This document shows positions 4,549 to 16,141 of a stretch of 64,000 bases of DNA, piece after piece (the stretch's first letter is position 1; the number at the start of each line of letters is the position of its first letter). The position numbers and the translations under genes are program-made. The DNA is taken from contig CAJFCJ010000003.1 in the NCBI GenBank assembly GCA_904063045.1, positions 62,001 through 126,000 of the forward strand, read 5' to 3'. The notes under the pieces are model-generated. The model had not been told where the DNA came from. It saw only the letters and a list, made by a program, of their open reading frames with translations, and made no database searches. This DNA comes from Dimorphilus gyrociliatus (Eukaryota; Animalia; Annelida).

Positions 4549-5499
4549 ATGTCGATTGATGGATATTTTCTCCCAGTTCAGGATTTACAATGCGGAATTT
4601 GCACCGAATCATTTGTGAATAATGATCCGAGGATGTTACCCTGCCAGCACACTTTCTGTCTCAACTGCTTGCAAGGTCTGAAAGATAAGGGAAAGCATTT
4701 TTCACGAAATTCTTTCCTCTGTCCTGTTTGCAGGAAAAGCCACCAATGGCCCAATTCAGGAACAAAGGGCTTTCCCAAAAATCTACTTGCCACATCGCTC
4801 AAAGCAACATATCAATCAAAAACGACGGCCGTCTCATCGGCCAGCGAAAGAAATCTGGAGAATTGCCAGCGTCACTTTCAGCAAGCGATCAATCCGCTAA
4901 CCGTCTGTAAATCGTGTAGGCAAAAGAATTTGTGTTTAAAATGTCTAACGGAGCACGCAACTTGCAGCTTGGAGCCGTACGATAAATTCTCGCAAGAGTA
5001 CGACGAGAATAGGAAAAGGATACAGGAAAAGGTGAAACTCTACAGGGATAATATTAACGACGAGTTGAAATCACTATTGAGTCAGCTAAAGACTGCTTTC
5101 AACGACGTAACAAAGGTTGTTGAAGAGAATAAGAATAGGCTAGAGGGAGAGATAATGAAGAAATTGGGGTCATGTAAAGCCGAAGCAGATTCAATATTGT
5201 CCAAGCAGGAGAATGAATTTTCCGATTTAAAATCGGCCGAGGAAAAGATTGACATTCTTCTAAGTACGAAATTGACTTTTTATCCTAGTTTATCGTTGAG
5301 TATAGGAAGTTTACGTAGGGAGAGAGACAATGAGCAAAATCGTAAAGTGACCACTGGGGCCGGTTATTGGTCATCTTATTCCAATCGATTCGGTAGGAAT
5401 ATCCCATTTGATACAAGAGTAATATTGAACGGTTCTCCAGTCGGCTCCCAGTACTCTGAATCCTGTACTAGTTCGGAGACGGATAAGATGAAAAGTTGA
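4549..5499 (+). CDS. TRIM-like RING-HC / B-box / coiled-coil protein, intronless
   Basis: RING-HC C-x2-C...C-x-H-x2-C-x2-C...C-x2-C (CGIC...LPCQHTFCLNC...CPVC); B-box-like CQRH...CKSC...CLKC...H; then a heptad-rich helical region. Confidence 0.85.
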   Translation: MSIDGYFLPVQDLQCGICTESFVNNDPRMLPCQHTFCLNCLQGLKDKGKHFSRNSFLCPVCRKSHQWPNSGTKGFPKNLLATSLKATYQSKTTAVSSASERNLENCQRHFQQAINPLTVCKSCRQKNLCLKCLTEHATCSLEPYDKFSQEYDENRKRIQEKVKLYRDNINDELKSLLSQLKTAFNDVTKVVEENKNRLEGEIMKKLGSCKAEADSILSKQENEFSDLKSAEEKIDILLSTKLTFYPSLSLSIGSLRRERDNEQNRKVTTGAGYWSSYSNRFGRNIPFDTRVILNGSPVGSQYSESCTSSETDKMKS

Positions 5500-6400
5500 C
5501 CGAACTAATCTCCTATCGTTCTCGTCTAAAACAGTCGTATTGTAGAAGAGCCTTCCAGAATATTTCTCTCTTAGAAAAAGTACACCCAGTTTTTTTCCAT
5601 TGTCTTTGTTTTTTTCTCTCTAAATAAACTACACTTTAAAAAAGTCTAAATCATTTAATTCTAAATATTTCAACATATTTCCCTGAAATGTTGCAACTTG
5701 TTGAAAAAAATACAAACCATACTCAGCATACATAAATTTATGAGCGCCATACGCACACACATGACACATGTGTCGTTGGATGAGGGGTGAGGGATGAGAG
5801 AGAGAGAGAGAGGAAGGGAGGGAGAGAGAGAGATGGAGGGAGGGAGGAAGAGACAGAGAAGGAGAGAGAGATAAACAGATAGATAGATAGATAGACAGAC
5901 AGATAGATTGACAGACCGACGCGTAGATAATAATACAGAGGAGGAAGAGGAGGGCTGTTGTAAAATGTTTATTTAAATGAATGCGCAAGCATAGACTATA
6001 GATTGAAAAGATAAGGAAGTATTTTAATAATATAATTAATTAGAATGATAAGAGAGGAATGAAAAAGTTCTACATCTGTTGAAAATGATAAAAATTAAAA
6101 CGAACAAAGAGAATTAAAAAAAAATCAATGAAATAGTTTACTTATAAATAGATAATTGTTGTTTAGTTTACCCTTTGCAATTGGGAGACGTGTAAGCTAG
6201 CTTTATATTTCTTTGGCAAACAATCTTGTTTTTTAGGTTTAAAACTTATTATTGAATTCTGTTGGCAATTGTTTTGCTCTGCAAATATTTTCCATTTAAC
6301 AAACTAACGAAATAAACAAATAAATTAAGGTTTGTATTTTATTGTTTTCTAGTCGCCATCTTATTTGTTTCTATTAGTATTATTAATTCCTGAGTATAGG

Positions 6401-7752
6401 ATGTCGAACGACGAAGAAGTCTTATTCGATTTGGACCAGTATGAGGAAAAAGCGAAAGAGATGATTGAAGACAACTTCATTAGGAGATACATCTTTGAAG
6501 GGGCCGACTTCGACCAAGGAATTCGTAGGAATAGAGAAGCTCTTAAAGAGTATTTATTAAAATACAATACATTAATAACGTATAAATTATTATTGTTTCT
6601 CCAATTGAAAAGCATCCTTCTCTATCCGAGAGTATGCAGAGGTTTGGCCAAGAAAAGAGACCTGTCGACGAAAATTCTAGGGCACGAAATCTCTCTTCCC
6701 ATAGGCTTTTCGCCAACAATGTGCCGTTCGTGGATTCAACACGACGGAGAATTGGCAGCCGCCGAAGTTGCCATAGAAATGAATTTTCCATTTTGCCTAA
6801 GTTTCGTTGCCGAAACGCCTTTGGAAAGAGTGGCGAAATGCTACAAGCGGACGCCGAACTGCGTAAAATTTTTCGGTGTATCGCTCTACGACGAGGAGAG
6901 TCTTAGAGAAGTTGTCGACAGGGCTGAAAAGTGCAATTATCACGGTCTGGTGGTGACCGTCGATCATCCTTGCCACGGTAACAGGAGATTCGACAAGGAA
7001 GATCACGAAGAGTATAAACAATTCAGCAATATAACAATGCCCAATTTACCGAAAAAGATGCAGGAAGAGTTCAAAGACGAAAACGCCTCCTACGACCAAA
7101 GTCCACCGGAAACCTTTGAAGATTTGGCTATGTTAAAAAAAATGACCAAACTTCCAGTTATTGCTAAAGGTATCCTTAGACCAGAGGATGCCCTAGCTTG
7201 CGTTAAAGCTGGTATTGACGCAGTTTGGGTGTCGAATCACGGTGGTAGACAATTGGGCGATTGTCCCGCAACTGTAGAACTCTTGCAAGATATAGCTCCA
7301 GTTCTCAAGGGCTCTGGAGTCGAATTGTACATCGACGGAGGATTTCGACACGGCGCCGACGTGCTGAAGGCTCTGGCAATTGGTGCAAATTGCGTTTTCG
7401 TCGGTAGGCCAGTTTTAAGCGGATTGGCCGTTAATGTAAGTAAATTACATCATAAAGAGAAATTCTTATCATTCGCTTCTTTGCCAATCAAGAATTTCAT
7501 TCTTGTTGTAAATTATAATCATAATAATTATTATTATCAAACTTGATTCCACTTGCCTGATTAACTATTAATTTTTCTCTTTTTCTCTTTTTTCTCTCTT
7601 TCTTCCTTCCTTCCTTCCTGGAAATTCTTTAGGGAAAAGATGGAATTGAAGAGTCAATGAAACTAATGAGAAAAGAGTTGGATATAGCGATGGCATTGTG
7701 CGGATGTAACAGCATTTCAGATATAGATAGCAGCGTACTCTGGTCAAAGTAA
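6401..7752 (+). CDS. FMN-dependent alpha-hydroxy-acid oxidase (HAO/glycolate oxidase family), copy 1, 363 aa
   Basis: Exons 6401-6549, 6613-7435, 7633-7752 with GT..AG introns. Motifs VSNHGGRQL, TVD, IAKG, YIDGGFRHGADVLKALAIGA, VGRP. Ends VLWSK*. Confidence 0.93.
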
Positions 7753-8009
7753 TTGGTCTACACCAAGATCCTGATCAGTATCAATAAAAGGAGAAAACAA
7801 TTCTACATTGGTAGAAAATCAGAGAAAAAAGAACAAATTAGTCTATTCGTTCTAAAGCTTATAATAAAAAAACGTTAATGAAATAAATTCAATAGGCTTA
7901 TCGTTGGTTTCGTAGTTAGATATCTTTTCTTTCTTTGCGTATATTCATATTCATATTCAAACTCAGTCATGCATTGATTCGTTCGTTCAGTCGTTTATTC
8001 AATTATCCA

Positions 8010-8110
8010 TGCACCCATCCATGCATCCAACCGTCTATCCATCCATCCATCCATCCGTCCAACTGTCCGTCCATTCGTTCGTCCATCTATACATCTAACC
8101 TTCATCCAGT
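8010..8110. repeat. (CCAT)n-type degenerate microsatellite
   Basis: Tandem catc units. Produces the spurious HPSI ORF 7935-8201. Confidence 0.85.
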
Positions 8111-9152
8111 CATTCATCTAGTCATCAATCTATCCATACATTCGTCGAGGCAACCAGTGAATCGTTGGATTATTCAATTTTTTCCTTCTTTCTTCAAATA
8201 GGAGAAAAAGATATAAAAAAGGGGAGAAGCAAAAGGGAATGGATGGAGATTGACGGGAGAGGGATGATGGGAAGAAGAATTGCCTGTCTTTTTGAATCTA
8301 TGATTTTCAAGAGTTTGAATAAGGAATATATTGTTGTCTGTGTTGTGGGTAGTATGTAGTTTATTTGAAGATTTTATATAAAGCAAAAATATAGAATATA
8401 TGTAAGGGTTGTGTTAACGAGCTGATTACTGCATAAAGAGTGAATTATTGCTATTTTATTATTCGATTCAAAGGTAAAAGGTAACCTTTTAGTTTTAGAT
8501 TAGACAACTGAATTGAATGTGATTAATCGATTTATTTAATTCAATGTACTACTATGTTTTAGCATAGATGAAAATGATGTTTATTTCTACGAATTGACGG
8601 TTAAATTGGGGTTTGTTTTCAAGTTGTTTAATGTGATAGAACAACGGCGTCGTTTTGTTTATTTCGTGTATAAATGAAAGAAAAATAAAAGAGTCGAAAA
8701 GAGAGAATGTAAAGTCTATATGACGAAAAAGATGTAAAAATGTAGGATTGACGAGCTTGTTCAACAACAACAGATTGCTTTACGTATAGAATAATAATAA
8801 ATAATAAATTGCCGTGTAGTTAAAAAATATGATTATTAATCGAATTGAATTAGTGATGAAATAATTAATATAGTTAATGAACGATTGAACAAATGAATGA
8901 ATGAATGAATGATTCATTGATTTTTGCGCTTTACATTTCGAATGAAATGTAATTTAAAAATATATTCAGATTTTCCAATGTTATATTGAATTATATCATT
9001 TCTATTTTGGCTGTTTGTTTGCTTTATTTTTTATATTATTTTAATGGAGAATGGAGAATAATAGCAATAAAAAAAGAATATACTTGTTATTATTTTACTA
9101 GTGAAAATTGCGTTGGACTGTTTACTTCATCAATGATATCGTTCTACTAAAC

Positions 9153-10391
9153 ATGGATAGAATTATTATCAAGGGACAGTCTAATTTGAACGGTAGAATT
9201 AGCGTTGCCAAATCTAAAAGTTCTTCTCTCGCTCTTATGGCGGCTAGTGTACTTTCCAACGAACCGATAACTCTGATCAATCTACCTAGAATACATGATA
9301 TTTCGGTCATGAAGGGTCTGCTAGAAAGCGTTGGCGTCGTTATCGAAGAGCAGGGAGAATCAACAACCTTTAACGCCTCTAATCTCGTTACGAACGAAAT
9401 CTCAACTGACGCGACCTGGGCGTCTATTTATCTACTAGGTCCTCTGCTGGCCCGCACTGGAATTGTGAAAATTCACCGTCCCGGAGGTGGTGCGGTAGCT
9501 AATAGAGATGTTGATCTAACTTTAAACAATATGGAAAATATGGGCGCCAACGTTTACATGGAAAATGCTTACGTTAAAGCCACCGCCACCAGGATTGTTG
9601 GCAAGAATATTGCGCAACATTTTCCGTCGGTTGCCGCTACGTTTAACACAATCATAACCGCAATGATCGCCGACGGCAGGACTGTCTTGGAAAATGCGGC
9701 AAAGGATCCGGAAATAGTCGACCTGGTAGCCTTTTTAAACCTCATGGGAGGGGTAATTCAGGGATCGGGTATGGATAAAATTATCGTCGATGGAACGTCA
9801 ATAAAACAACTGAAAGGCGTCGAATACGAACCAATACCAGATTATATAGAGGCAACGGCGTTTATCGTTAGTGGACTGATTACTCAGTCGGAAATAACAA
9901 TAGACGAAATTGACCCTAGCCATTTGCTACCAATAACAAAGTTCCTGTTGAAAATTGGCGCAAAGTTTACAATAGGCACCGACTACATACGAACGTATAG
10001 GAAAAAGATATTTAGCGGTAATTTAGAGACGGCTCCCTATCCCGGCTTTCCATCCAACGCCCAACCCCTTCTCCTTGCACTCCTCACTCAGGCTCAGGGA
10101 AAGTCGATAATAACTGAGAATATAAACGAAAATAGATTTCACGTAGTAGCCGAAATGAGGCGGTTAGGCGCCGATATAGAATTGGAGGAGAAGAGAGCGT
10201 TGGTAAACAATTCCAAGTTGACAGGAGGAAAAGTCTATTGCGAGAATAGTATAGACGGTATGGCGTTAGTTTTAGCCTCGTTGGCGGTCAATGGAGAGAC
10301 GACTATCGAAAATGTAGAAATTTTGAAAAGAGGATTTCAAGATGTGATTGATAAATTTCAAGATTTAGGTGCCGATATAAGGATTGTTTAA
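9153..10391 (+). CDS. murA: Bacterial-type UDP-N-acetylglucosamine enolpyruvyl transferase (MurA) homologue, intronless, 412 aa, with substituted catalytic residues
   Basis: Collinear with MurA end to end: [58 protein letters not shown]-x2-ENRF, RLGADI, KRGF...LGADI. ATG at 9153 matches the MurA N-terminus; the track's TTG at 9108 is unlikely. Confidence 0.93.
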
Positions 10392-10429
10392 TGCGGTAAA
10401 GAGATTCCAATTGGATAGGAAGATAGATA

Positions 10430-10525
10430 GATGGATGGATGGATGGATGGATGGATGGATGGATGGATGGATGGATAGTTTGATTGACGGGTGAATGAAT
10501 GGGTAAATGGATGGATGGATGGATG
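10430..10525. repeat. (GGAT)n-type microsatellite just downstream of the murA stop
   Basis: Direct tandem gatg/ggat units. Confidence 0.9.
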
Positions 10526-10742
10526 AATGAATTCAGTATACGCAATCTTCTTTTGTCCATTTATTTGTTTATATTTAGAGTTTTTTTTCTTCTGTTTATT
10601 GAATGAAATAAAGTTGTTTGTAGATGACATGAATTGACACATTTTAAATAAAAATAAGAATAATAACAATAGTAAGATTCGCTATAATCAATACATAAAT
10701 AAAGAATAAATCATAATAATAACAAAATAAAATTCAAAGGGA

Positions 10743-13700
10743 CTATGCCATTACTGAATCTGTACTCTTCTTAACGAGTTCGTTGAATAGGCCGCCACTC
10801 GATATCAGTTGATCGGGAGTGCCTTTTTCTACGAGTTCACCTTTATCGATAACGAGAATCATATCGTAGTCCATTATTGTTTTAATACGGTGAGCAATAG
10901 TAATAATAGTACAATAATGAAAATGTTCCCTAATACAGTCCTGTATAAGGGTGTCAGTTTCATTATCTATATTTGCAGTTGCTTCGTCCAGAATTAGGAC
11001 ATTAGCCTTTCGAAGAAAGGCTCTCGCCAATGACAACATTTGCTTCTCTCCAACGCTAAAATTTCCTCCGTTATCTACAACTTTTGCGTAGATAGTATCT
11101 GGTAGTAATTTTATCTTTGGCGCCATTCCTACGCATTCGAGACTATTCCATATTTCCTGGTCAGAATAGATGCTATTCGGATCTATATTTGATCTTACAG
11201 TACCCGTAAACAAGTACATATCTTGGGGTATCGTTGATACTGAAGATCTGGCAATTGCTAGAGGTAAATTGAAGAGGTTAATACCGTCCAGGATGATTTC
11301 TCCTTCAGGTTCAACAAGTCTAAGAATGGCAGAAACGATTGTGGATTTTCCCGCTCCTGTTCGGCCGACAATGCCAACCTGATAAGAGTTGAGAGATGAA
11401 GTCAAAAGAAGGTAAGAAAGAAAGAAAGAATGAGAGTAAGAATGAACGAACGCACGAACGAACGAATGAATGATTGAGTAGAATTTGTATTTATCTCTAT
11501 TTATCCTCCTTACCTTTTTACCACTTTCTATTTCAAGAGAAAAGTTTTTCAAGGCGTAATCGTCAGTACCTTCGTATTTTAGACTGACATTTTTAAAGGT
11601 TAGCGAACCGTTTCTAGGCCACATCATATCTGTTGGAAGTTCTTTAAACTCTTTTTTCTCTTTATCCAATTCAGTATAGTCGATAACACGTTCGACCGAA
11701 GTAAACTAAAAGAAGAAAGAAGGAAAAACTTAGTTGGATGTTTCTAATTTGTCGGTTTTGTTTTTAATAGAAAACTAACCGCGTCTTCCATGCGGATAAA
11801 CGTTTGAAATATGGTCTGCAGAGGTTCAGACACATGAAGGATATATTGTATGACCAAACCTAGGAGCGTTACTGAGAGAGTAGTAAATCTCAACATGATT
11901 ATAGAAGTTGCCATTAGGATAAGGAAAACGATACTTGTTATCATTGTTCTCAGCCAGAAATAGGACGAATTCAACGCCAAAATCATACGATTATTCTCAT
12001 CCAACAACTCTGAATACTTTTCCCAGAATCTCTGTTGAACATCGTGGCATCTAATAACGGTTAGACCGTCGATAGTATCGCTGACGTGAGAGAGCACGGG
12101 ACTATGGCTGCTTGAGCTCAATCTCTTTAGGACAAAAATTGTTTTCGTTGCGAATTTGAATACTATAAATATGAGTATGATGCTTAGGGCAAAACTAATG
12201 CCAGACATAGGATAGACGTAGAGGGTAAACGAGACGCTAAAGCATAATTGCAGGACTAAATAGATGAAGGTGGCAAAAACCAAAAAGAGTACGTGATCTA
12301 CGGCCATAATATCTTTAGAGAATCGGTTGAGGATTACTCCTATTCTCTGAGAGTCGAAAAACATCATTTTAGCCCTAATGACCTCTTTAAGCATGTCGGC
12401 GTGAATCAGTATGGAGGCTCTCGTATTAAAGGCGGCAAATATAAATTCAACGCCTAAACTGGCCAAAGTTAGAAATCCTATTCCAGCAGCGTAGAATATT
12501 AATGCTTGCCGGTAGGCGGCATAATTTCCAAAGTTTAATTCAATAACCTCGGCGGTATTCTTATCAATTATTAATGTTATGAAGAGGACGACCAGAAGAA
12601 AGAGGACGCCCAGAAATAGAAGAAAGAGGGAGCCTTTTTTCATATAATACCAATGAACACCCCAATTAACGAATCCCTGGCCAGTCCTCTCCAAGTAGTC
12701 TTTCTTTTCTGTTGCATCATCGTGTTTACCTACTTTGTAAACTTCTTTTGATAATATCTGTAGTTGCTCATCTTCATCCTTGTCGACAGTATACTCCGAC
12801 ATTTCTCCATCACTAATTATTAATGATTTATCAACATTTTTCAAATACTGAGTTTGGTGCGTTACTAAAAGGACTGTCTTTGATTTAAGATAATCTTTTA
12901 TGGCAAATTGAAAGACGTGCTCTCCTATATTGGCGTCTAGAGCACTCAAAGGATCGTCTAAGAGGTATATATCCGATTCTCTATAGAGTGCTCTGGCCAG
13001 ACTTATTCTTGCCCTTTGACCTCCGCTTACTTTTAAACCTCTTTCGCCCACAATGGTTTGATCTTTAAGAGGAAATTTTCCAATATCTTCAATCAGTTTG
13101 CTAACTTCGTAGACTGTTTGCAACTTGACCAAATCCAATGGCTCTCCAAATATTACATTTTCTCTGATTGTATCACCAAATACCCATGGTTCTTGGGGCG
13201 AATAATTAAGCCTTCCCTTCCTTATTATCGAACCACTAAGGGTGTTTAATTCGCCCATAAGAACTTGAAGAAGCGTCGACTGTTGTTGCGAAATAGAAGA
13301 AAGAAGAAGGGAGGAAGAAGAGAGAAAAAAGAGCGTATTAAACAAACAGTAACGAAAAAATGGGATTTTTAAAAAACAAATATTAACCTTTCCACATCCA
13401 ATTGTACCTATAACGCAGTAGACTTGACCAGGTTTCATACTAAGGTTAATATTCTTTAGAATGGGAGTGTCAACGTTATCATCCCACGTGGCCGAAACGT
13501 CCTCCAACGCTATCGTTTGCTCGTTTTCGCTGGAATCATCCCTAACAATTTTATTCTCTCTATCGGGAAGTTTGAGAAATTCCTGCAAACAAAAAAACAG
13601 AGACGACGTTGGAGTTGTATGTTCTAATCTATAGATGATTGTCTATTTCTATACTAATCATTTAATGAATGAATGAACAAGTGCCGGTACATACCATAAT

Positions 13701-15209
13701 TCTTTCAAGGCTTTCGTACGCTTCGGCTATGTGGAACATAGCGGTTGCGAATGTATTAAATAGATGGTCTTCGAAAGTTCCCAGCATGAGTGATATATAT
13801 AAGAATTGAGCTACGTTCAAGTGCTCAATTTGTTTGAACCAGTACATGGATGCCAGAACTGCGAATAGGACGATATGCGGTGCAACAATACCCATAGCGT
13901 TTGGTATGGCTTCGATTATAAGCGATTTAAAATTAACTAATAGTTCTTTCCTCCTCTGTTCCTTTATTTTACCCTCAAAGTTACGTTCCCAGGCGTTCAT
14001 CTTAATCAGCTTTATGGCGGAACAAAGTTCCCTAACGCTATTTACCCTCTTATCGGAAAAGAAGGTGATCCATCCGTAATAACTTCCAGAGAGGTAACTT
14101 AAGATAGTTTGAATGAAAACGATGACGGCTAATGTGATTATCATGACGATTGTGACGTTGAAACCAATTTCCATAGATATTATAATAACTAATACAATAG
14201 ACATTACTGGTGAGGTTATGATAAACTGCAAAAATGATAGACAGTCCATAACTTGTTCCGTATCGCTCGTAATCAATGTTAGAATTCTACCGGAAGTAAC
14301 GTTATGTTTTGCAGTCTTGCTAACGGAGAGGAGCTATTAGATGGAAAATAGACGTTGGTTAATAGTTTTGTTTTTTTTTAAGAAGCTAATTATCTGTTCT
14401 TAGCATATCGGATTGAGTAGTAATAATAGTAATCATAGCAAAGATCGTACCAACCTTCTGATAGATGACGCCTCTTATGATGGTTTTAGCTCGAAGACCA
14501 CCAACAAGTTCAAGAAAATTACAATAAGTTATTAGAATATCGGCTAGTAGGTGTATTAAAAATATTCCAGAAAGTAGGCCATATTCTAAAGGAACAACCA
14601 TCGTATTCAAACTAAACTGGCGCAAAAGCTGGTAATATGAAATTGTACTAGCCAAGACGAGTAGGTCCTGTAAAATAGAATCAACGCAAACCAGTTAATC
14701 AGCTAATAGTTTTGGATTAAGGAATTTAGAGCTTACCGTCATGCTATTTAGGAAAACGGACCAGGCTAAATATTTGCAAACGAGCTTTCTAACGGCATTC
14801 ATTACAGTACCCATTCTCAGTTCTTTGTCCTTAATTTCTTCTCTGCGGGAAAATACTCTCGATTTAGAGGAGAAAAACAAAAAAACAAAGACAGAAACAA
14901 TCTTTAAATCGACTCACCGGTATTCTTCGTAAGCTGGAAGTGACTTTAGTTCTGGTAGCGTTTCAAATACAGTCTCTGGTACGAGTTCTTCCTTTGCACC
15001 TCTTCTTATAAACGAAGTCATCCACCTAGGAATTGTTCAAGTTTCTTAAATGATTGATTAATCGGTTCCCTTCCATATACAGTATATGGAAGGATCTAGC
15101 TATACAATTGTGAACGTTAATTCCCTTACCAGAAACATAGTCTCGAAAAAATGTTGGCCTTGACATAAGGGCACTCTTGGCTCTTTTCAATAAGTCTGGT
15201 GGTCTCCAT
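10743..15209 (-). CDS. ABCC4/MRP4-like ABC exporter, copy A, 1222 aa (TMD1-NBD1-TMD2-NBD2)
   Basis: Nine exons: 15209-15130, 15025-14918, 14842-14737, 14667-14455, 14333-13695, 13582-13388, 13279-11780, 11705-11514, 11378-10743; all junctions GT..AG and in phase. N-terminal CPYVKANIFSRLCFWW. NBD1 GTIGCGKS / VSGGQ / YLLDD; NBD2 GRTGAGKS / FSVGE / LILDE; ILNRFSKD. Confidence 0.92.
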
Positions 15210-16141
15210 TGCAAACTTTTAAATCAGTTGGTCGATATTTTCCCGTTACAAACTCATTCTGTCAGGGTTTGAATAGGTTTGTTTTATTGCTTTTAGAGGA
15301 AGACGATAAAATTGATAAGTATACATCTATAAACCAAGGGAGAGAGAGAGAGAGAGAGAAGCGTTCTAAAAGTTCTTACTTACTTGAAAGATGAGGAAAT
15401 GGTCGATTCACTTGTCGGTCGAACTTTTACAGAGTTCTCTATACTAACCTACGGTGGCCATTTTCATTCAAACTGTACGAATTGAGGTATAATCGGAAGC
15501 GTCATATTGTTATGAACATATGTTGTCTTACCAATTGTTTTATTCCTATTCATATTAATTCAAACGTGGAAACATCTGTAATCAGCCATTCTTTTTGTTT
15601 ATATCATCAGTCATGAATTGTTGCTGTACTTTACTGCATACACGCATTTATATATAGGCATATATAATTCCCGCCTATAGAGCATATACAGTACGATTAT
15701 TTTTCATATTTTACTTTCCTTATTAATATTCATAGAATTTTTATTAAAATAAAATCCTTATCAGTCGTGTTTTTGAAAAAACAAAACAATATAAATATTT
15801 ATCAGGGTGGTCGTTTGGAAGATACCGCTAAATCGCTTCTGGCTAATTTGCATATATTCAAAAATTAACGATTTCCTCTACGTCATTACTACGTATATTG
15901 AAAATTGGATATTTTCCAACCGTTTGAAAAAAAGACTAATAATCAATAGATAGATAAAGATAGGGAAATTTAACGGTTGATTAGGGGAGTTGTTGGATCA
16001 ATCGTAAGATTTTTGTTCCGTTATTTTATCGCCCATTTCTTTCTATCCCTCTTACTTCTCTTTAACACTTTTCGTGAATATTTTCTTTGCTATCTAGCTT
16101 TAAGAACATATAAGAAGATAGATAGATGAATAGAAAGACAA

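Follow-up and report, generated by a model that had tools for sequence, protein, structure and literature searches.

The stretch of DNA analysed here (the window) comprises 64,000 nucleotides of the genome of Dimorphilus gyrociliatus, a miniature marine annelid (assembly GCA_904063045.1, scaffold CAJFCJ010000003.1, positions 62,001 to 126,000 of the forward strand), and carries, between two animal genes, an open reading frame (ORF) for a homologue of the bacterial cell-wall enzyme MurA. The assembly annotation also has a single 412-residue gene at this ORF, and the identical protein has a single coding location, on this scaffold. The Pfam family PF00275 (EPSP_synthase/MurA) matches residues 7-401 with an expectation value (E) of 8e-67, identifying the protein as a MurA homologue; in a sequence search it matched all solved MurA structures (best E 1e-81, residues 1-412), and in the NCBIfam subfamily NF006873 it scored 390 against a cut-off of 297. 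An in-frame TGA is located at position 9102, 17 codons upstream of the ATG, with no ATG between them, and the ATG itself is flanked by A (-3) and G (+4). The N-terminal residues align one by one with those of bacterial MurA, without any extension. Given this alignment and the upstream in-frame stop, a signal or transit peptide is therefore absent, and the MurA homologue is, judging from its sequence, a cytosolic-type protein. The features of the locus are presented in Table 1.

Table 1 Features of the MurA-like locus, numbered from the first nucleotide of the window. Identity counts compare the two annelid copies, with the number expected from bacterial MurA pairs; P0002 is the orthologue in a related annelid
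Feature	Position	Strand	Remarks
Hydroxyacid oxidase gene (FMN_dh, DgyrCDS1984), upstream neighbour	6401..7752	+	intron-bearing animal gene
MurA-homologue ORF	9153..10391	+	intronless, ATG to TAA, 412 codons plus stop, no internal stop
Codons 22-23	9216..9221	+	Lys22 kept, Asn23 to Ser (alignment, census)
Residues 61-90, up to position 91	9333..9422	+	18/30 identical, 11.3 expected, P = 0.003
Trp89	9417..9419	+	E. coli Arg91 position, 3-residue deletion before it; common to orthologue P0002
Former catalytic loop P-G-G-G-A-V-A-N-R	9480..9506	+	Gly113 at the position of the catalytic, fosfomycin-target Cys115
Residues 101-130, catalytic loop			14/30 identical, 20.1 expected, P = 0.004
Residues 141-170, Ser162-Gly164 segment			12/30 identical, 19.3 expected, P = 0.0005
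Tyr231	9843..9845	+	Arg232 position; common to orthologue
Residues 241-300	9873..10052	+	48/60 identical, 28.5 expected, P = 3e-9; variable in bacteria
Ser301-Asn302	10053..10058	+	FPTD to FPSN, Asn at catalytic base Asp305; common to orthologue
Residues 361-380, Asp369-Arg371 segment			9/20 identical, 14.8 expected, P = 0.002
Asn365-Ser366-Ile367	10245..10253	+	Asp369-Leu370-Arg371 positions; Asn-Pro-Ile in orthologue
Arg393	10329..10331	+	Arg397 position; kept in both annelid copies
First AATAAA after the stop	10607..10612	+	216 nt downstream; candidate polyadenylation signal
ABCC-type ABC transporter gene, downstream neighbour	10743..15209	-	intron-bearing
Second ABCC transporter gene, in tandem with the first	from 16376	-	intron-bearing

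The window protein was aligned in MAFFT with its best relatives and with E. coli K-12 MurA (b3189), the numbering of which is used below for active-site positions. Unlike bacterial MurA, the worm copy has Cys115 replaced by Gly (PGGC to PGGG), Asp305 by Asn, Asn23 by Ser, Arg91 by Trp (with a deletion of 3 residues just before it), His125 by Thr, Arg232 by Tyr, Asp369 by Asn and Arg371 by Ile. The preliminary description of this locus had listed precisely these losses from a manual alignment, and all of them recur in the MAFFT alignment, as do the residues it had reported as kept, i.e., K22, D49, R120 (Arg118 of the worm protein), S162, R331 and R397. Further changes in the window protein are L370S, F328N, G164A, G118A, P121D and T304S. 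Gly and Pro residues with a structural role in the family have been retained.

The extent of these losses becomes clear from a census of 12 key sites in 311 bacterial MurAs, from which longest-ORF extractions from bacterial loci that were not murA had been left out. Residues K22, N23, R91, R120, H125, D305, R331 and R371 are invariant in this set, while Asp369 is conserved in 91% and Leu370 in 94% of the sequences. Position 115 is occupied by Cys in 97% and by Asp in the remainder, in agreement with the earlier statement that natural variants use one or the other. None of the 311 proteins deviates at two or more of the key sites; the window protein deviates at 8 of the 12, and it has lost far more of these residues than chance would produce. 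The curated murA equivalog model TIGR01072 (cut-off 392.7 bits) gives the same picture, with scores of 383.3 for the window protein and 310.3 for its orthologue, both below the cut-off, and of 549.4 for a Bdellovibrionota MurA.

A sole close relative of the window protein, P0002 (427 residues), was found among 5.8 billion proteins. Their identity across the 412 aligned codons is 57% (56-58% with different aligners); the best matches after P0002 are bacterial, at 43-44% identity. P0002 is encoded without introns on identical 1.4-kb contigs of the sequencing runs SRR23372228 and SRR23372229, flanked by AT-rich DNA with a T-run and a (GTTT)n microsatellite. The host can be recognized from a second gene. 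The closest non-self relative of the hydroxyacid oxidase next door is P0258, with 87% identity across the 262 residues of the query region. It is encoded on an SRR23372229 contig, where the intron positions coincide with those of the D. gyrociliatus gene. Therefore, this run represents genomic DNA of a related annelid. Two word-index searches and an exhaustive profile search of 1.84 billion representative proteins revealed no clade members beyond this pair; a profile built from the pair scored the annelid cluster at 831 bits and the next match, a bacterial protein, at 317 bits. The coding DNA of the related annelid is markedly more AT-rich than that of D. gyrociliatus, with a GC content at third codon positions (GC3) of 0.27-0.29 vs 0.43-0.47.

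P0002 shares W91, G115, Y232, N305, N369 and I371 with the window protein, as well as the 3-residue deletion, so that the active-site remodelling is older than the split of the two worm lineages. The fosfomycin-target Cys, noted as absent in the preliminary description, is thus Gly in both annelid copies. P0002 has gone further and deviates at 10 of the 12 key sites, having additionally acquired K22R, R120N and R331K and an insertion of 3 residues in the catalytic loop.

A gene of this kind raises the question of whether it belongs to the worm genome at all or represents bacterial contamination or an assembly mis-join. The gene lacks introns and is of a bacterial type, the short-read contigs do not bridge it to its flanks (the genomic contig there covers only 8250-8881 and ends at a short repeat), and the genome paper reports that proteobacterial contigs were removed, all of which could speak for contamination or a mis-join. 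However, the gene is situated ~71 kb inside a scaffold of 3.23 Mb (3,232,594 bp), and the interval 5001-16000 of the window, which covers it together with the facing ends of both intron-bearing neighbours, contains zero N. Its flanks have 26-29% GC and animal-type microsatellites, the orthologue has eukaryote-like flanks in independent genomic data of a related worm, and the gap of the profile scores between the annelid cluster and the closest bacterium is wide. Moreover, composition fits the host in each of the two species: the GC3 of the MurA-like gene is 0.43 vs 0.36-0.47 for host exons, and in the relative it is 0.29 vs 0.27, while codon usage correlates at 0.77 with host exons and at 0.43 with Bdellovibrionota murA. 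Such closeness to the host in GC3 and codon usage indicates a long residence of both copies. We consider contamination or a mis-join to be extremely improbable; a bacterial-type gene is resident in animal nuclear DNA.

Some minor features of this region may be mentioned here. The microsatellites are of the (GGAT)n and (GAAT)n types and occur on both sides of the MurA-like gene (7935-8201, 8882-8926 and 10420-10530); they give rise to spurious "IHPSIHPS" ORFs on both strands and also broke the short-read contig. At least three hydroxyacid oxidase paralogues occur on the scaffold (DgyrCDS1984, 1989 and 2183), which are mutually 51-55% identical.

The bacterial affinity of the gene was assessed in a maximum-likelihood (ML) tree of 54 proteins (LG+C20 with posterior mean site frequencies, 1000 ultrafast bootstraps). 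The annelid pair was joined at 100/100 on a long stem of ~1.1 changes per site and grouped with the Bdellovibrionota side at a split that has 100/99 support. The closest named sequences belong to Bacteriovoracales, Bdellovibrionota and Oligoflexia, and these bacterial relatives have canonical active sites throughout. Thus, the possibility considered in the preliminary description, that bacterial clades might already carry the same substitutions, is not borne out, either by the nearest relatives or by the census. From the position of the pair in the tree, "Bdellovibrionota-like" is the most apt term for the donor, which should not be assigned to a named lineage. Linkage to animal genes, host-like composition, bacterial affinity and presence in a second host together identify a horizontally acquired gene in an animal genome, and an animal host together with horizontal acquisition, neither of which figured in the preliminary description, explains the observed residue losses.

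Is the gene maintained by selection, or is it a functionless relic of the transfer that is turning into a pseudogene? The number of nonsynonymous substitutions per site (dN) between the two annelid copies is 0.29-0.30. At synonymous sites, the copies have reached saturation (71% of the four-fold sites differ), and the same is true of the adjacent oxidase gene (78%), for which dN is 0.12-0.14. Both copies have remained open, over 412 and 427 codons, in AT-rich DNA in two species. Two long frames that are still 57% identical at the protein level after saturating neutral change rule out free decay, and both copies are under purifying selection. This upholds the earlier argument that the ORF is intact through selection rather than decay: the orthologue is open, has the same replacements, and its dN is far below the saturated number of synonymous substitutions per site (dS). 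The dN/dS ratio, for which the preliminary description had named a value near 1, coupled with no expression, as counting against its view, is instead well below 1. A numeric estimate of the ratio was discarded, since counting methods fail at saturated dS and the ML value of 0.03 is unreliable.

A decaying relic would be consistent with the loss of the catalytic residues and with two features of the substitution rate. The MurA-like protein evolves ~2-4x faster than its housekeeping neighbour (dN of 0.30 vs 0.12-0.14), and the branch of the orthologue is 3.5x longer than that of the window copy (0.69 vs 0.20). The oxidase shows symmetric protein divergence, without a rate difference between the two species; therefore, the longer orthologue branch is specific to the MurA-like gene. 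Opposed to decay are, besides the open frames, the protein identity and the low dN, the retention of the structural Gly and Pro positions of the family, a predicted fold of high confidence in both copies and the presence of one 60-residue unit that is 80% identical between them (see below). Taken together, these data make a functionless relic highly unlikely.

The fold was predicted with AlphaFold2. The mean confidence (predicted local distance difference test, pLDDT) was 93.7 for the window protein and 93.2 for the orthologue, with a predicted template modelling score of 0.92 for both. A Foldseek comparison of the window model with liganded MurA structures, a check already proposed in the preliminary description, returned template modelling (TM) scores of 0.95-0.97 and root-mean-square deviations of 1.4-1.9 Å, and the model is predicted in a closed, liganded-like form. 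Thus, both copies are confidently predicted to have an intact MurA fold. The lowest-confidence parts of the window model are the catalytic loop (pLDDT 66) and residues 81-90 (pLDDT 70); in the orthologue, the weak spots are the former catalytic loop, the stretch just before position 91 (pLDDT 74) and the insertion.

Identity between the two annelid copies was set, site by site, against that within 400 pairs of bacterial MurAs that have diverged to the same overall degree (52-63% identity). The strongest constraint lies in residues 241-300, a stretch that varies in bacteria: it is 80% identical between the annelid copies vs 47% expected from the bacterial pairs, and in 5000 simulations, no 60-residue window matched this excess. 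These residues make up most of a folding unit of the C-terminal domain, 231-293, which consists of helices 231-243 and 255-267 and strands 247-251, 272-274, 278-281 and 290-293. The core of the unit (E. coli 255-295) has a net charge of +4 and +7 in the two copies vs a bacterial mean of -0.1. A second, weaker excess of identity is found in residues 61-90, which are acidic (net charge -5 and -7 vs a bacterial mean of -0.2). General nucleic-acid binding, an idea suggested by the basic patch, was rejected as a property of the whole protein, which is acidic overall (isoelectric point 5.3).

The opposite is found around the former active site, where the catalytic loop, the Ser162-Gly164 segment and the Asp369-Arg371 segment are all less conserved between the annelid copies than in bacterial MurA pairs (Table 1). 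Across 25 former active-site positions, a list based in part on the preliminary description, the copies are 36% identical vs 57% overall. Of the 12 key sites, 7 are identical; this is close to the average and shows that the replacement residues do not drift freely. The strongest constraint has thus moved off the active site to residues 241-300, and its relocation elsewhere in the fold speaks for a role in binding or scaffolding rather than for new catalysis at the former site.

Another question is what chemistry, if any, may be left to the protein. In bacterial MurA, Cys115 serves as general acid/base and is required for the product to leave, Asp305 takes part in the final deprotonation, and Asp369 and Leu370 are ligand contacts (PMC4062475; PMC4790336). 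Lys22, Arg120 and Arg397 hold the phosphonate or phosphate group, and Cys115 can be replaced by Asp only, the C115E mutant being inactive (PMC4790336). Since the catalytic residues and three anion-binding arginines have been replaced, enolpyruvyl transfer from phosphoenolpyruvate (PEP) to UDP-N-acetylglucosamine (UDP-GlcNAc) has very probably been abolished; the literature roles of the replaced residues thus support the earlier supposition that the canonical reaction is lost. The preliminary description had further assumed that part of the phosphate/anion pocket remains. This is true of the window copy, which retains Lys22, Arg120 and Arg397, but not of the orthologue, which has Arg at position 22 and Asn at position 120; therefore, a function common to both species cannot depend on this triad.

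The protein may nevertheless still be an enzyme, either a weak MurA that relies on other residues or a transferase, of the enolpyruvyl or a related type, that acts on a new substrate by new chemistry in the remodelled cleft. Such a possibility is supported by the phosphate binders of the window protein (PMC4790336), kept along with Asp49, Ser162 and Arg331, by the occurrence of the same six replacement residues in both species in a cleft that is not drifting freely, and by the closed, liganded-like form of the predicted fold. However, both proton-transfer residues have been neutralised (Cys115 to Gly and Asp305 to Asn), and Asp369, Arg371, Arg91 and Asn23 are lost too; the one tolerated substitute for Cys115 is absent; the orthologue has changed Lys22, Arg120 and Arg331 and carries an insertion in the catalytic loop itself. 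In addition, conservation in the catalytic loop and the substrate-binding segments falls significantly below that of real MurA pairs, and both annelid proteins remain under the equivalog cut-off. We regard a retained enzymatic activity as unlikely.

A different use of the cleft can also be envisaged, in which the anion-binding catalytic site would have been converted to a neutral sugar-binding site and the protein would serve the worm as a cytosolic sensor or binder. Under this scenario, the Trp, Tyr, Ile and two Asn residues that replace three Arg and two Asp, and that are conserved in both species, would form the new site; a make-up of Trp, Tyr, Ile and Asn is typical of carbohydrate-binding sites. 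The targets would be bacterial cell-wall building blocks (fragments of the GlcNAc or N-acetylmuramic acid type) or the worm's own amino-sugars, and the charged putative surface at 241-300 would couple binding to a host partner. If true, a cell-wall enzyme of bacteria would have become, in an animal, a receptor for molecules related to the cell wall. We consider this specific scenario quite unlikely.

The interpretation that we favour, and hold to be probable, is that the horizontally acquired MurA is a domesticated pseudoenzyme in which selection acts on the ability to bind a partner or a non-anionic ligand rather than on catalysis. The alternative put forward in the preliminary description, a repurposed enzyme or pseudoenzyme, is supported in that the residues are lost and selection continues; with 8 to 10 of the 12 key sites lost under purifying selection, the two proteins correspond in these respects to what is understood as a pseudoenzyme. 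The binding role itself is one that we infer from these data. The history of the gene could then be as follows. A bacterial murA, closest in affinity to marine predatory Bdellovibrionota (Bacteriovoracales/Oligoflexia), would have been transferred horizontally to an ancestor of the dinophilid annelids, in the nuclear genome of which it settled as a gene without introns. The active site was remodelled before the two sampled worm lineages separated, Cys115 becoming Gly, Asp305 and Asp369 becoming Asn, and three anion-binding arginines becoming Trp, Tyr and Ile. Purifying selection has since kept the fold, while the catalytic loop and the UDP-sugar-binding segments have drifted, and binding would now proceed via the remodelled cleft and the newly constrained putative surface.

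Several observations weigh against this interpretation of a domesticated, transferred pseudoenzyme. The annelid pair forms a long branch near the base of the Bdellovibrionota-like group and is not nested within it with support. The six replacement residues (W91, G115, Y232, N305, N369 and I371) are conserved in both species, and a remodelled catalytic or ligand site may therefore remain. Saturation of dS limits the statement on dN/dS that is supported to "well below 1". The dinophilid kinship of the second worm is deduced from one other orthologous gene and should be taken as probable. Finally, the D. gyrociliatus genome paper makes no mention of a MurA-like gene.

The annelid protein can be compared with several known systems. 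It resembles bacterial MurA (EC 2.5.1.7) in being full-length, of equal length and without added domains, with 41-44% identity to Bdellovibrionota-type and 33-34% to E. coli sequences, and in its predicted two-domain inside-out alpha/beta-barrel fold. Apart from the replaced residues, it differs from bacterial MurA in its location in an animal nucleus, in the deletion of 3 residues before position 91 and in an inverted pattern of conservation, in which active-site segments drift and a putative surface unit that is variable in bacteria is conserved. Pseudoenzymes in general are inactive homologues kept for binding, regulation or scaffolding; one of them, Rcl1, is an inactive relative of the RNA 3'-phosphate cyclase, which belongs to the same fold superfamily as MurA. 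The annelid protein shares with them a retained fold, lost catalytic residues, purifying selection and a constraint located away from the active site. Unlike the usual pseudoenzymes, it arose after a transfer between domains of life and not by duplication within one genome. Neither a MurA-derived pseudoenzyme nor an annelid MurA was found in the literature searched.

Bacterial cell-wall genes have been described in other animals. A Wolbachia-derived murA is present in the ant Pheidole pallidula, for which the authors only suggest a possible antibacterial role (PMC13320244), and in the mealybug-bacterial peptidoglycan mosaic, mealybug genes are catalytic in the peptidoglycan pathway of the symbiont (PMC6838666). 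In these cases, as in the worm, an intact bacterial cell-wall gene is resident in an animal, and the ant gene even belongs to the same enzyme family. In contrast to them, the worm copy is devoid of the catalytic residues and has no known symbiont partner, the gene occurs in two species that have diverged deeply, and its donor would be a free-living predatory lineage and not an endosymbiont. Transfers from bacteria to animals are usually explained by the enzyme activity gained; here, the activity appears to have been stripped and the protein kept, which would make it a clear-cut natural example of how a foreign enzyme is put to non-catalytic use. The system also offers a tractable test of how pseudoenzymes originate, as MurA, the ancestral enzyme, is well known in its chemistry, its structures and its assays, the worm has a compact genome and serves as a laboratory animal, and the constraint map points to a putative surface of 60 residues.

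Degenerate sites are not confined to the worms. A few bacterial MurA homologues among the top 150 profile matches also have them, with replacements that differ in each. In P0450 (WP_191139532.1 of Polycladospora coralii; L088:6001-7254), the changes are N23D, R91S, C115T, R120S, R331S, D369H, R371S and R397S, and the gene lies in the neighbourhood fba-tal-murA-glpX-rho, which we take to be the murAB position in Bacillus. P0450 looks like an inactive second paralogue; Bacillota typically have two MurA paralogues (PMC4062475). Many of the same key positions have been hit in P. coralii and in the annelids, with different residues, as an independent event in an unrelated clade. Besides P0450, the degenerate bacterial homologues comprise one Bacillota and one Clostridia protein from metagenome-assembled genomes; P0481 (L089:6001-7263) carries N23K, C115N, R120Q and R331T, and P0387 (L090:6001-7284), encoded among spore-cortex genes, carries K22R, C115E and R371A. 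All three proteins (P0450, P0481 and P0387) are of normal MurA length and have the plain database label MurA, which may thus hide inactive members in the worm and in a few bacteria. In addition, metagenomic proteins were observed in which a MurA domain is combined with extra sequence, namely P0007 (594 aa), P0380 (584 aa), P0406 (612 aa, with C115N) and P0509 (652 aa); P0007 also carries PF00107, and such fusions are unusual for MurA.

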